From Haliotis rufescens (lineage: Eukaryota), in contig NW_025963890.1 in the NCBI RefSeq assembly GCF_023055435.1, forward strand, positions 19,158,001 through 19,222,000: a DNA stretch of 64,000 nt, written 5' to 3'. The position numbers were made by a program, and so were the translations under genes. Under the pieces are notes generated by a model. It saw only the letters and a program-made list of their open reading frames with translations. It made no database searches and had not been told where the DNA came from. How positions within the stretch are numbered: position 1 is the first letter of the stretch; the number at the start of each line of letters is the position of its first letter. Of this stretch, positions 743 to 64,000 are shown piece by piece.

Positions 743-3386
743 TCTGAGTTCGGTCTTCTGCGTGCGAACCAAACGTTCTGAGCGTTGTCGATGATGTTTC
801 CGAGTGCCTGGCTTACACAGCCGTCCTCTACACGTCCGTATTCGGTTGCAATCAGTTGGAATTGCCCTCTGGTCTGTGACTGACCGGAAACGCTCACTCG
901 GGCCTCCATCTGGACGCGTTGACGGTCAAACCATCCCCCACCCCATCTGTTCTGTCTTGCCTGTATGAGACGGACATATGTTATTTCATATGTCTAGCTG
1001 TCTAGGTTATCATGCTCAAGAGAAAGAATAATGGCCTTGCATTTTAGCGGAAAATATATTTCATATTTTTTGGAAGTTTGACACATTCATAGTTTGTGAT
1101 TGGTTGTGATGTGAAATATGTGAGGTGAGGTGAGGTGAAATTGGGTTTAACGTCGCGTCCAAGATTATTGCACTTATATAGCGACGTGCATGCACGTGTA
1201 TGTGTGTGTGTGGCTGCTTGTACTAGTCCGGACTGATGCCGATTTATAGCGCTAGCTCACTGAGATACCATGCCGCAGTTTAACATGAATACCCCACTCA
1301 GACACAGTATACTGACTCCGAGCCGACCAGTCCTTGTTTTAGCCCCTTAATGCCGAGCGCCAGACAGGATAACAACAAGTACAATCTTTTAACGTCTTTT
1401 TGTATGACGCGGCCCGGGATCGAACCCTGGAGCTTCCGCTCTCCGGGCGGACGCTCTACCACTAGACCACGGAGGCGGTCTGAAATATGTTGAGCAGGAG
1501 ACATTGAGAGTAGATGGCTTGGAATGTATTGTGTCTTGTCAGTCGTGGGGCAGTGGTGTCGTGTCGTGTCTTGTCGTGGGGTAGTCGTCTCGTGTCGTGT
1601 CCTGTCGTGGGGCAGTCGTGTCGTGTTGTGTCGTGGGGTAGCTGGTCGTGGCGTGGCGTGGCGTGGCGTGGCGTGGCGTGGCGTGGCGTGTTCTGTTCTT
1701 TATTCATATACCCAACAGGGCTTGGTACCAGTTTCGGTGAGATAAGTTAACGGCACTGAATAATTCTCGAACTTGAAACATGCAGAGTTTGCGATTGGTA
1801 TACTGTGATGATTTCTGGATGACATACGTTAACCCCAAATGAGCACATGTGACTTTGCTTTTGAAGAACAATGACCTAATGATAAAAATGAAAGGTGATG
1901 GTCCATTTACATACCTCTACATTAACATACACCTCTACATATGTCAAGACGAGGCCCTGTGGCCTTTAGTACAAGTTAACGTAAAAAATGTTGAGAATGG
2001 GATCTTATATTGAACGCATGCTTGAGGAACACAGCAACAGATCTTATGACATCAGTATTTTTAGCAGTTTTACATATTCACCACTGAGTCGGTACTAACA
2101 GTTGTAACAGGATGTTAATAATGTGTTCTTATAATTGAATACTTATCACAAATGCACAGGACATGACACCAGTCGTAAACAACATATATATATTTCAATT
2201 TGTACACAACGAACTTGAAAATTCCACTGTCTAACATTTCCGCGATTCCGAAAGTTTCGAAATTTACTAACGAATCATCTAAAAACTTTGCAACATATAC
2301 GGGCATGTGTTTTGGCATGTTAGTTGTCAGATGGCCTTTGTGTTATGGTAAAATGAACATTGCATGATGGAAGTCACTGAGTATTTTCGCCTATCCTTGC
2401 CAATAGATCAACAGGTGCAAGTTTGAAACGCGACTCCGTCCACTCGAGGCATATGACTAACAAGCCGGTGGCACAATTGGCTTCTTGAAGTCACTTCTGC
2501 CATGTCACATGTGATTGAGAAACACCTAGAAAATTACATACATGAATATTTACACTAATTAACAGTGTAAACAAGCATTTAGACATATTATTAAGTCATG
2601 CTAACGACAAACTAGTTTGAGAAAGAAATAGGTGTACATCACAGTCCTTACCCCATCACGGAATGTCACTCTCAATTCATCCCCATTGGTATTCCGTCCT
2701 ATGCACGTGTACACAGCTACAGAAGAATATAAAATACAGTTGCATTTATTCTGAAGTTGCAAGCCGAGAACAAGTTTTTTATTTTTTTAGACGACAATCT
2801 AGGTACAGTTTGTAAATACCATTGCTGCTGTACCCGCTGTGATATGATGGAAATATTCATATTCATATGGGTGTATGATTCTACATATTTTGAAGATTGT
2901 ACATATGAATAAAATACGAACACAAAGCAGATGGTGATGTTTTGTACAAATAGGCCCTTTTTAATTTAAAATTTTGTTCTCATAGTATTTCGTTATTGGT
3001 TTTTCATCAACAATAATAACCACTGCCATCGACTGATGAAAATGCATTTTTAAAGATTTATTTTTACACCTTGTTCTCAATGAAATAATGATTGTTACAC
3101 CTGACAAGACTATCAAAATAGATATGTAAGGACACTTCAAACTACGAAATAAAGAACACACAAATGAAAAATACTCACTTATCTCTTCCTGATTTCCGAA
3201 ACCATTTCTATCTCCAAAGAAAGAATCCCTACCGAACCCCAATCTTTGGAAGGGGGGAACGTCCAGCCCTCTTATTAGCGGTGCGACAGGGTTCTGGTTT
3301 CCCTGCCACCCAAACATAGGTTGCTGGCCAATAACAATTTGCACTATCCCTATCAAAGAGAGAACTGCGATACCATGAGGAGCCAT
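743..3386 (-). CDS. Gene A (3' part outside window): secreted protein with short Gly/Phe/Gln-rich N-terminus and degenerate Cu/Zn-SOD-like domain
   Basis: Exons 3386-3179 (MAPHGIAVLSLIGIVQIVIG|QQPMFGW...EEI, phase 1), 2716-2652 (TVYTCIGRNTNGDELRVTFRDG, phase 0) and 960-743 (ARQNRWGGGWFDRQRVQMEARVSVSGQSQTRGQFQLIATEYGRVEDGCVSQALGNIIDN..., phase 2). All have GT-AG boundaries and are clearly homologous to gene B exons 2-3. Confidence 0.85.
1122..1480 (-). mobile_element. tRNA-derived SINE (Meta-domain type), full length
   Basis: Box A/B head, central ...TACTTGTTGTT..CCTGTCTGGCGCTCGGCATTAAGG domain, (CACCT)n tail. 10-bp target-site duplication (TSD) tgaaatatgt at 1112-1121 and 1481-1490. Confidence 0.85.
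1540..1690. repeat. (GTGTC/GTGGC)n pentanucleotide microsatellite
   Basis: Directly visible. It explains several spurious ORFs in the track. Confidence 0.9.
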
Positions 3387-3440
3387 GATGTAAACTCGTA
3401 CAGGTCGACACAGGGTGTGAACGACTTCTTTGACGTGTCC

Positions 3441-61085: not shown

Positions 61086-62457
61086 CAAAATCGCTTCTTT
61101 TTTTTCCCTTAAACATGCTGGAGGTGGGAATTGATCATGTTAAGGTCGAACAAACACTGGAACTCGAATTCAGTTTGAAATCGGAAGGTTGTGGAGATGT
61201 TATTACAATTTACCGCACTTGGTATTACAATTTGTCGCACCTGTCTTTCAATAGGAATGATAGAAATTGAAACAAAATAGCATTTTTTTCCTTAAACATG
61301 CTGGAGGTTGGAATTGATCTTGTTAAGGTCGAACAAACACTGGAACTCGAAATCTTTTTTGTTGTTGTAAATACAGATATCAAGAATTTTATGTACAGTT
61401 GCCTTTATCAATTCAGTCGTTTCAGATTTCGATTTTCAAACAGCTTAGTCGCACATTTTAAACTTCGTGCAAATTTCTTTGTATATTTGCAAACGAATAA
61501 TATTTTATTACAATCTACCGCAGTGGTTATTACAATTTGCCGCAGTTTTTATTACAATTTTGCGGAGAAAGGTTGTTTTGCAACAGCTTCGCTGGACATG
61601 CAGGATGTCCTGAAAATAATAACGTAATTTGAAAACAAAGCATTGTTCGACTCTCCCCTTCAGATAAATATATTAATCTTGAATCAGTGAAAAGCTCACA
61701 GGGACTCACTTCTGTAAATAACAATTTGTTCATAAAGAAAAATAAACTGTAGGGCGAAAGAAAGGAAACACCAATGTTTGATGGTGGCTGAAAATGAAAG
61801 AAACAATTCCATGGTAATATATTTGATACGGGTATCATAGCTGTGTTTTGAACCTTAAGTTTGCAGTGTTTACGGCCTTGTATCGTTTTAATAACGTTTG
61901 TAATTTTTTGGTCAAATCCTATTTTCAATAGTATACTGCCTTTTGTACGTCAGTTTATTGTGACCATTATTTGCATAACATTTGAGCATGAAAATTAAAA
62001 GCTGAGAAAGTTATATTTTATAGAAAGTATGCATATATTTTATCAACTTTATTCATAATATTCATAAAATTATAAGAATGCAATAAACAGTATATGTAGT
62101 TAAAGACAATGTCTGAATAAACCGTTTAACACTAAAGAAATTTCAAAGGCGGATTACACAGGAATGGATGTGTGAATCACACTATTGCATAACGTAAATA
62201 AACGCTATCAGTGAAATGTCTGGAGTGAAAGGACCGGATATTAATGAATATATCGCTCTTACTTTACCTGGGAAAATAGTAGATCACTTAAAGCCATTCC
62301 TTAATTACATAAGGTACATGGGATAGGACTTCCGATTGGTGTCTTCTTTTATATCTGTGACATAATTAATTACCAGCTTATTATACCTGTAGTGTATATA
62401 AACCGGGTCAGATAGATAACAGAATTATCTCAGATTCTTCTCGAGTAAAGATCTACC

Positions 62458-64000
62458 ATGGCTTTCCTCGCAGTAGCTCTTCTATCTATTATAGCTCACC
62501 TGGCTTTAGGTCAAGGTTGGGGTCAGAGTAACGCCGGACTTGGTCAAGGTAATGCAGGACTTGGTTTGGGACAGGCAGGGGCTTCTTGGGGTCAAGCCGG
62601 ACTTGGTCAAGGTAATGCAGGACTTGGTTTGGGACAGGCAGGGGCTTCTTGGGGTCAAGCCGGACTTGGTCAAGGTAATGCAGGACTTGGTTTGGGACAG
62701 GCAGGGGCTTTTTGGGGTCAAGCCGGACTTGGTCAAGGTAATGCAGGACTTGGTTTGGGACAGGCAGGGGCTTCTTGGGGTCAAGCCGGACTTGGTCAAG
62801 GTAATGCAGGACTTGGTTTGGGACAGGCAGGGGCTTTTTGGGGTCAAGCCGGACTTGGTCAAGGTAATGCAGGACTTGGTTTGGGACAGGCAGGGGCTTC
62901 TTGGGGTCCAGCCGGACTTGGAATTGGCGCTGGTGGACTTGGATTTGGTACCAATGGACTTGGGATTGGCAGCTCGGGTTGGGGCCAAGTTGGAGCAGGA
63001 TGGGGCCAAAACATTATCAACCCTTACCAGAGTAAGTACTCATAGATACTTTAATTTTAGTTATAGCCACTGTACATCCAGGGTAAGGTTTATTCTCTCT
63101 ATGATTGTCGAATGACCAAGGGCAAGATTTGTACAATAAGACAGGAAATACTGGAAATATAAGCCTCTTGGTTTATTCCCTGACATACATTGTACGCTGG
63201 ATATGCTGGATGTCTTGAAAATATGTGTGTCTAGTTGAAAAAGAAGACGTTTGCCTCCTTTCAGACAATCTAATTGTTTGTGTTGAAGCAGTGGCCTAAA
63301 CCATAATTCCGAGGCACCGCAAAAGAATAGTAAACGGTCGATCTCTAAGAAGCTTGTACATTTACTTATTACTGAAACTAATTTTTGTATGAGTATATTG
63401 CGTGACATGAAGTGTCCAACTGTATTTGCAAGAATTTAACTCTTTGTATTGAAGCAGTGACCGAAACCATAATTCCGAGGCACCGCCTCAGGATAGTAAA
63501 CCATTGATCCCTAAGAAGCTTGTATTTTTTCCTAGATACAACCATTACATGCACTGGAACAGCAACAGGTTTTGCTGTATCTCTGACCCTGAAGAGGATG
63601 CAGCCAACTTGGGGAGGATGGGGTGTAAGTGGTTTTATCTATTGACTGAATGTGGTTTAGTGTTTGGGTTGTCAGATACGTCTTGAAAGGTTAGTAAACT
63701 GTCGGGCAAAAGAAAGTTTACACCCGTGTTTGATGGTGGCTTAAAATAATACAAGCAAGACATTATTCGATGGTGATGTATTTGATACGGGTATCATAGT
63801 TGTGTTTTGGACCTTAAGTTGGCAGTGTTTCGGCAACTGTTTTCAGGCTGGTAACGTTTGTAATGTTTTGGACGAAACCACATACTTTCTTTTGCCTTGC
63901 AGATACTACATTAGAACTAATCTCATTAGTGTATGTTTTCAAGTGAAATGAGTTCAAAGTGTTTCTATGTAGTTTGGTCGATCACGAAGCGGTCTGACTG
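62458..64000 (+). CDS. Gene H (3' part outside window): paralog of G with an expanded 21-aa repeat
   Basis: Exons 62458-63031, 63536-63624 and 63973 to beyond 64000. Exon 1 is 252 nt (4 x 63 nt) longer than in G. Confidence 0.88.
62530..62910 (+). repeat. Coding 63-nt repeat, six copies (AGLGQGNAGLGLGQAGA[S/F]WGQ), in gene H exon 1
   Basis: Variant order is S,S,F,S,F,S. Gene G has only two units (F,S). Confidence 0.9.

Follow-up and report, generated by a model that had tools for sequence, protein, structure and literature searches.

The window considered here is a 64,000-nt stretch of the Haliotis rufescens genome, taken as a whole; it lies on contig C112, has no N runs, and its GC content is 36-48%. 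It contains eight paralogous genes with a five-exon structure, detected by tblastn with exon pieces and by six-frame reading. Six genes are complete, and two are cut by the window ends. All genes follow a common plan: a signal-peptide-like start, a low-complexity (LC) part encoded by repeats, and a Cys-rich domain of approximately 150 residues. The best overall explanation, which we hold with moderate confidence, is that they encode secreted non-catalytic barrels derived from Cu/Zn superoxide dismutase (SOD), fused to Gly-rich LC modules and tandemly expanded in H. rufescens. Genes A, B, C and D are on the minus strand, and genes F, G, H and I are on the plus strand. In a scan of the whole assembly with an exon-3 profile, the matches within the window number exactly eight, with E-values from 1e-21 to 2e-16. 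Thus the count of at least eight given in an earlier note on this DNA is right for the window. The genes, their exons and the internal repeats are as follows; the boundaries of the gene C exons are good to a few bases.

740..3386, minus strand: gene A, partial, H. rufescens LOC124138864 (XP_046361706.1); exons 4-5 lie before window position 1
~3179-3386, ~2652-2716 and ~740-960, minus strand: gene A exons 1 (putative signal peptide and short G/F/P-rich region), 2 (VYTCIGRNTNGDELRVTFRDG) and 3
8768..12823, minus strand: gene B, complete; intron phases 1, 0, 2, 0; splice sites read from the sequence
~12590-12823, 11932-11999, 10711-10934 and 9652-9763, minus strand: gene B exons 1 (putative signal peptide and LC with 46% Gly), 2, 3 and 4
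8768-9130, minus strand: gene B exon 5, encoding LC..C..PLCGKIG, then a 94-residue G/M/Q-rich tail and the stop
8931-9001 and 12629-12687: 18-nt tandem repeats of gene B
21260..25821, minus strand: gene C, complete; ortholog of the H. cracherodii 'rtoA-like' protein P0002 (tblastn, 94-100% per exon)
~25084-25821 and ~24624-24707, minus strand: gene C exons 1 (putative signal peptide and 224-residue S/G/P/N/F-rich LC) and 2
~23656-23799, ~22433-22600 and ~21260-21367, minus strand: gene C exons 3, 4 and 5
31029..35704, minus strand: gene D, complete, from open reading frame (ORF) segments and tblastn; P0008 aligns at 89-96%
34603-35704 and 33907-33980, minus strand: gene D exons 1 (putative signal peptide and ~345-residue LC with 47% Gly and S/A/M) and 2
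32874-33010, 31869-32022 and 31029-31136, minus strand: gene D exons 3, 4 and 5
35074-35620 and 34797-34912: gene D repeats, a 24-nt unit in 22.5 copies and a 21-nt unit in 5.5 copies
38775..40763, plus strand: gene F, complete; intron phases 1, 0, 2, 0; splice sites read, with ORF segments
38775-39117, 39424-39512 and 39650-39783, plus strand: gene F exons 1 (putative signal peptide and GWGQ/GLGQ-type LC), 2 and 3
39928-40156 and 40647-40763, plus strand: gene F exons 4 (WGQQ-type repeat replacing the zinc loop, then strands 5-7) and 5
38853-38986: 63-nt repeat of gene F
47518..49687, plus strand: gene G, complete; exons ~47518-47860, 48167-48255, 48399-48532, 48851-49079 and 49571-49687
54924..56938, plus strand: gene H, complete; exons ~54924-55245, 55651-55739, 56018-56151, 56349-56577 and 56822-56938
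62458..64000, plus strand: gene I, partial; exons 1 (62458-63031, with the 63-nt LC repeat grown to 6.2 copies) and 2 (63536-63624)
63982 onwards, plus strand: gene I exon 3, running past the window end (exon-3 match at C112:19221982); most of it and exons 4-5 lie beyond position 64000
11974-11991, 10806-10826, 9748-9762, 9652-9666 and 9062-9076, minus strand: motifs FTCIGK, LVVTRYG, TGVLG, GRGLA and CGKIG
21290, 31059, 40710, 49634 and 56885: CCKLG motifs

All complete copies have open frames, and the splice sites are canonical where they were read (genes F and B). The exon translations of gene A correspond to residues 1-69, 71-91 and 92-164 of XP_046361706.1 (P0038) with zero mismatches. The mapping of P0002 as five exons at 94-100% identity supports the five-exon structure that the splice sites of genes F and B had indicated. 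All motifs quoted in the earlier note are present at spliced-exon positions. The genes are not hidden from annotation: RefSeq models already cover them under the name 'uncharacterized protein' or under repeat-driven names (PE-PGRS-like, rtoA-like, collagen-like, fibroin-like). The RefSeq and ortholog models agree with the window genes exactly or at 94-100% per exon.

The N-terminus encoded by all eight genes is hydrophobic over 18-22 residues, after which comes G/A-Q. This start resembles a signal peptide, and secretion of the products, also claimed before, is likely. The proposed fusion to LC domains is borne out, and the LC exons consist of DNA tandem repeats. Their composition differs between the genes: Gly accounts for 46-47%, together with N/Q/W in gene B and S/A/M in gene D; genes F-I contain GWGQ/GLGQ units; the LC part of gene C is S/G/P/N/F-rich; and gene B has in addition the G/M/Q-rich C-terminal tail. 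The repeat copy number varies between young paralogs, the 63-nt unit being present in 2.1-2.2 copies in genes F, G and H versus 6.2 in gene I. The site of the zinc loop carries an LC insert in genes F-H, and a far larger one in some distant relatives. Genes F and G are 94-97% identical at the DNA level, introns included, and genes H and I are somewhat further off. By this measure gene G is a young duplicate of gene F.

The Cys-rich domain very probably has a SOD-derived fold, the Greek-key barrel of Cu/Zn SOD, judging mainly from predicted structures. The window exons were searched piecewise, and for full-length searches and folding database orthologs and intronless paralogs from the same genome were used. 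The AlphaFold2 model of P0024 from H. asinina contains a confident eight-stranded domain (residues 58-220, pLDDT ~90), as does the model of P0005, the H. cracherodii ortholog of gene A (residues 68-230, pLDDT ~90). In Foldseek searches against PDB the top ranks were occupied only by Cu/Zn SODs for both models; the best E-value for P0024 was 8e-4, and P0005 had 88 matches at E<=1e-3 with target TM-scores 0.65-0.71. VIA-align, which is independent of Foldseek, compared each model with 48,161 chains. The first 14 chains all belong to the SOD family (SOD1, CCS domain II, SOD5, EC-SOD, viral and bacterial SodC, YojM; EC-SOD stands for extracellular SOD). Human SOD1 was aligned over 132/153 and 135/153 residues, and the gap from the SOD-family chains to the next fold was 2.6 to 4.6 Z units, the two models representing subfamilies that are only ~25% identical. 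At the level of fold the predicted models thus contain an eight-stranded Greek-key beta-barrel superposable on SOD1/SOD3. The SOD beta-barrel of the earlier note is therefore upheld by models of orthologs and paralogs. Protein language-model features point in the same direction. For a B-type intronless copy, 30/30 feature neighbours in ESM Atlas are in the Sod_Cu set (score 0.90, 186-190/256 features). For an F-type intronless copy the top matches are also Sod_Cu (score 0.86, 178-181 features), and the ten best family-bearing matches of each query all belong to the Sod_Cu family or clan.

The introns of the domain can be compared with those of the canonical EC-SOD genes that this genome carries on contig C79 (slashes mark intron positions):

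After strand 2, phase 0 in both: FAQTD/ or FKEMN/ in C79 EC-SOD; TFTQA/ in gene B and ..GGWG/ in gene F
In the zinc loop, phase 2 in both: ..EDGT/R/HVGD in C79 EC-SOD; GPVLG/S/.. in the family
After the GR motif, phase 0 in both: GRAIV/VHAG in C79 EC-SOD; GRGMA/LCTS and GRGLA/LC in the family

The third position matches exactly. The first two are in the same loops, but the loop lengths differ. Gene structure is a line of evidence independent of the models, and in its intron positions and phases the family agrees with the molluscan EC-SOD lineage. The GC and CC cysteines and the motifs G-x-F-x-V and GRG are collinear with those of SOD.

Several results weigh against the SOD assignment. Pfam Sod_Cu (PF00080) gave no match at E<=10 with exon pieces, three orthologs, 25 family members and five intronless copies, and the family stays below the gathering score for membership. 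The six-frame genome scan with PF00080 matched 33 exons on contigs C79, C146, C445, C323 and C223 and none in the window. Searches against PDB by phmmer and by hmmsearch, with P0002, A2 and the domain-only alignment A11 as queries, gave nothing. Alignment by hhalign of the family profile with the canonical abalone SOD exons produced matches that are short and weak, though in the correct register: VTERARVEDGC vs VHxYGDLsdGC (P 0.037) and laGRGlAL vs IiGRxiVV (P 0.011). No signal was seen by hhalign against the four domains on contig C323 that resemble copper-only SOD repeat proteins (CSRP). Thus sequence methods give no significant link of the family to SOD. Finally, the fold evidence comes from predicted models of orthologs and paralogs, not from the window's own spliced products.

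The register of the metal ligands was established by exon-wise MAFFT alignment with the canonical Cu/Zn SOD exons of the same genome and by the shared introns, with the GC and GR motifs in register. His46 is replaced by V, I, L or A, and His48 by Thr, which is nearly invariant in the family. The stretch His63-His71 is deleted; the zinc loop is ~12 residues shorter before the intron, and LC sequence takes its place after the intron. Thr, Pro or a gap is found at His80, and Val at Asp83. His120 is replaced by Cys, the register here being given by the shared phase-0 intron (GRAIV/VH vs GRGMA/LC). Arg143 corresponds to Ile, Pro or His in the residue ahead of (L/A)CC. Thus the copper ligands, the zinc ligands with the zinc loop, and Arg143 of the SOD enzyme are all missing, and the ligand losses listed in the earlier note all hold. 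The domain pieces contain no histidine in genes D, F, G and H and one in genes B and C; as the ligand columns are also replaced, a canonical Cu/Zn site appears impossible, and its absence is almost certain. From the lost site we infer that SOD activity has been lost.

Six cysteines are conserved: one in TC of strand 1, one in GC (Cys57), two in CC (Cys146 and the second Cys of EC-SOD type), and a new pair, made up of the Cys of LC, where SOD has His120, and a second one in the electrostatic loop, which is shortened. Across 25-26 family members the GC and CC cysteines show little or no variation, and they are aligned with the canonical GC and ACC. The intrasubunit disulfide Cys57-Cys146 of SOD therefore seems to be kept, as a putative pairing of conserved cysteines. 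The dN/dS ratios (Nei-Gojobori, aligned domain exons) are 0.13 for D vs F and 0.11 for A vs B, dS being saturated in both comparisons, and 0.155 for F vs H. Ratios of 0.11-0.16 show that the barrel is under purifying selection. Two exceptions to the cysteine pattern were observed. Exon 5 of gene B (window positions 9062-9076) encodes PLCGKIG where all other copies and the H. asinina relative P0007 have CC, leaving five cysteines, an odd number, in this domain. The intronless copy on contig C334 (L032) lacks the GC cysteine (VEGTKSAD).

The family has at least 26 members in the H. rufescens genome, according to the exon-3 profile applied to the whole assembly. Five further intron-containing copies occur past the window end, on both strands (C112:19,229,216-19,279,965), so that the cluster on contig C112 comprises 13 copies over ~121 kb. 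Thirteen more members are found elsewhere: nine on contig C2 (22,877,515-22,933,675), forming a second tandem cluster, and single copies on contigs C334, C168 (L033), C301 (L034) and C235 (L035). All thirteen off-cluster members are intronless, the whole protein being encoded in one open frame of 296-534 aa. This suggests retroposition and subsequent duplication. Three congeners, H. cracherodii, H. asinina and H. rubra, have orthologs. Beyond Haliotis, the family was found in six gastropod genera (Gigantopelta, Littorina, Lymnaea, Elysia, Plakobranchus and Lottia). The exon-3 profile, run against 1.84 billion representatives, returned ~26 single-domain relatives, which were used as the alignment for the models. 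A protein search with the whole-family alignment was dominated by low-complexity words and returned only six already known members. The UniRef name of the Lottia member (V4CSQ0) is 'Superoxide dismutase copper/zinc binding domain-containing protein'. No paper was found in the literature under the identifiers of the genes and proteins. A conserved C-terminal tag, G-(G/L)-(L/A/S)-F, represented by GGLF, GLAF, GLSF and RLSF, closes many of the B-type and distant members (P0014, P0016, P0027, P0029, P0030 and ORFs in L031, L033 and L034).

The closest known proteins come from the shell matrix of Lottia gigantea, where proteins combining LC and SOD domains are major components (PMC4094399). Lotgi1|166131 (658 aa), a major shell matrix protein, has ~450 disordered residues followed by a SOD domain; Lotgi1|234845 is a GDDR-repeat protein with a SOD domain; and the two are neighbouring gene models on scaffold 56 (PMC4094399). 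Like the abalone family, these are gastropod proteins with a long LC or disordered region and a single C-terminal SOD-type domain, encoded by neighbouring genes. However, their SOD domain is seen by standard domain prediction, whereas Pfam does not recognise that of the family, in which no ligand is left. By their descriptions, the LC parts are P/Q-rich or D/R/G-rich in the Lottia shell proteins, against G/M/A/Q/W-rich in the family. Lotgi1|166131 and Lotgi1|234845 are distinct from the Lottia gene that belongs to the family, LOTGIDRAFT_228102.

The dominin of oysters, an extracellular protein resembling SOD, has neither an intact Cu site nor SOD activity and plays a role in immune recognition (PMC13017621). 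Dominin, cavortin and pernin share with the family secretion, derivation from EC-SOD, a degenerate copper site and little or no SOD activity (PMC13017621). They are still recognisable as Cu/Zn SODs by sequence and are not known to have LC domains (PMC13017621), whereas the family has lost all ligands, has a deletion or repeats at the zinc loop, and carries LC arms. Canonical EC-SODs (human SOD3; the abalone clusters on C79 and C146) have the same fold, GC...ACC, N-terminal strand Cys and signal peptide as the family, and their three domain introns agree with those of the family in loop and phase. However, they retain His46/48/63/71/80/120, Asp83 and Arg143, and their exons each score 30-60 bits against PF00080, whereas the family has none of these features. 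Within the C79 EC-SOD cluster (L003, L013) His48 is replaced by Gln in one copy (FHVQT), and the bridge ligand His63 is missing from another (GEPFNPF). Thus partial ligand loss also occurs inside the canonical clusters of this genome.

The SOD barrel without a full Cu/Zn site is also known from CCS domain II, the Cu-only SOD5 and CSRP repeats without Cu sites, and YojM of B. subtilis, which are among the best structural matches of the family. These proteins belong to other cellular contexts (CCS is a cytosolic chaperone, SOD5 and CSRP are glycosylphosphatidylinositol-anchored multi-repeat proteins, YojM is a bacterial lipoprotein) and have no LC fusions. On contig C323 (906,399-910,706; L001/L010) there is a CSRP-like 715-aa open frame with four tandem SOD-like domains, two with copper-site motifs (GGYH[VI]H, GGH[WY]NP, GRSVVIH) and two without.

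Metal-poor SOD-fold proteins, LC and SOD fusions in the limpet shell, and the RefSeq gene models are thus already known. Since the Lottia shell matrix contains proteins with LC and SOD domains (PMC4094399), and the Lottia family member has a SOD name in UniRef, the statement of the earlier note on novelty is too strong. What appears to be undescribed is a gastropod-wide family outside Pfam recognition, the loss of all seven ligands and Arg143 together with a new conserved Cys pair, the zinc loop as a site of repeat insertion, and large tandem expansions with intron-containing and intronless subfamilies. As Pfam misses the family, surveys of molluscan SODs and of shell and mucus proteomes have likely overlooked it. 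The family represents the far end of Cu/Zn SOD degeneration, with the barrel still under purifying selection. The assignment offers a fold and a name for proteins annotated as 'uncharacterized', 'PE-PGRS-like', 'fibroin-like' or 'collagen-like' and links them to the limpet-shell proteins. The family is also a compact model for the reuse of an enzyme scaffold as a non-catalytic module whose LC arms evolve fast.

The proposed proteins would consist of two modules. The first would be a single Greek-key beta-barrel derived from Cu/Zn SOD, most likely by descent from a molluscan extracellular SOD; it has lost the Cu/Zn ligands, the zinc loop and Arg143, and would keep the SOD disulfide (GC...CC) and two further conserved cysteines. 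The second comprises one or more Gly-rich LC regions arising from unstable DNA tandem repeats; their sites are the two termini and the place of the zinc loop. Presumably unable to dismutate superoxide, the barrel may serve as a compact, disulfide-locked, non-catalytic carrier of the LC arms, and the arms may self-associate or bind matrix in a material outside the cell, for example shell-associated layers, mucus or another secretion. A structural or material role is quite possible by analogy, the Lottia shell matrix (PMC4094399) providing the precedent. More tentatively, and with a good deal of doubt, the histidine-free barrel could be a gastropod-wide carrier domain accepting hypervariable LC inserts at these three sites, which builds an extracellular material (e.g. 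periostracum, larval shell, or pedal or epipodial secretion) and in which the disulfide-locked barrels are nodes between self-associating LC arms. If true, this would document how a diffusion-limited enzyme gave rise to a biomaterial protein.

Some proteome data speak against a shell-matrix role in abalone. Of several family motifs, none occurs in the part examined of the sequences and tables for identified H. laevigata shell proteins, the one shell proteome compared at the level of motifs, and the gene id 228102 of the Lottia member is absent from the Lottia shell proteome tables examined. Papers on limpet adhesive, Crepidula shell and Lymnaea shell do not mention SOD. The strings CCKIG and GLALC do occur in the H. 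laevigata supplement, in unrelated six-frame translations. The 'glycine-rich boundary protein' of H. asinina was considered as a family member and rejected, its peptides being unrelated. A homodimer prediction for the P0024 domain had a score of 0.00 and gave no verdict; it speaks neither for nor against binding.

The main rival to a material role is a humoral one. The products could be soluble proteins of haemolymph or extrapallial fluid, similar to dominin, cavortin and pernin, that bind microbes or ions without catalysis, the LC arms adding avidity or antimicrobial activity. Tandem expansion and fast-changing LC modules fit diversification of the immune type, the failure to find the family among the H. 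laevigata shell sequences agrees with it, and a dominin-type SOD-derived protein has been linked to shell formation too (PMC6530089). However, LC regions with 46-47% Gly over hundreds of residues are more typical of structural secreted proteins, and we consider a humoral role unlikely. Another possibility is that the proteins handle metals or redox reactions with non-canonical ligands, either the extra cysteines at the old active site or Met- and Trp-rich repeats (GGMGQM, GGAMGGLG, WGQQ) binding Cu(I) or other ions. There is indeed a Cys at the His120 position and another in the old electrostatic loop, Met reaches 9-13% in the LC parts of genes D and B, and the WGQ repeat has a weak Pfam match (E 0.11) to the prion copper-binding octarepeat. 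However, the six cysteines are invariant as pairs, for which three disulfides in a secreted protein are the simpler reading; the WGQ repeats do not have the His of the prion octarepeat; and the Met-rich repeats occur only in some subfamilies and thus cannot be a shared function. This makes a metal-handling role rather improbable.

Two further explanations were considered. The barrel could be a convergent or unrelated immunoglobulin-like beta-sandwich, its likeness to SOD being an artefact of structure prediction. This would agree with the absence of significant sequence or profile similarity to SOD, but it is very improbable, as two independent models from subfamilies ~25% identical place only SOD-family chains first, the order of the cysteines and the GxFxV/GRG motifs follows that of SOD, the introns agree with the canonical genes in loop and phase, and the language-model neighbours are Sod_Cu. 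Hardly credible at all is that the copies are decaying duplicates or annotation artefacts without function. The loss of one Cys of the CC pair in gene B could be taken as a sign of decay, but the complete copies have open frames and canonical splice sites, their dN/dS is 0.11-0.16, and the family has orthologs in the three other Haliotis species and members in six further gastropod genera. Thus the secreted, non-catalytic SOD-derived barrel with LC arms is retained as the best explanation.

Several other features were observed in the window. A region at 36344-37534 was suspected to be a ninth copy and was rejected, as the exon-3 profile gave no confirmation. A 167-aa ORF at 26321-26824 with a Pfam match to the LIM domain is an artefact, as it lies inside a satellite. 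The latter occupies 2.8 kb between genes C and D (26317-29106); its unit, GTATGGCGTTCAGTACATCACT, is 22 nt long, and higher-order periods of 34, 56 and 78 also occur. An imperfect tandem array with periods of 20-28 and 100 nt (ACTCACTCAACCACTGACTG-like) is situated at 216-729, within an intron of gene A and directly downstream of exon 3.

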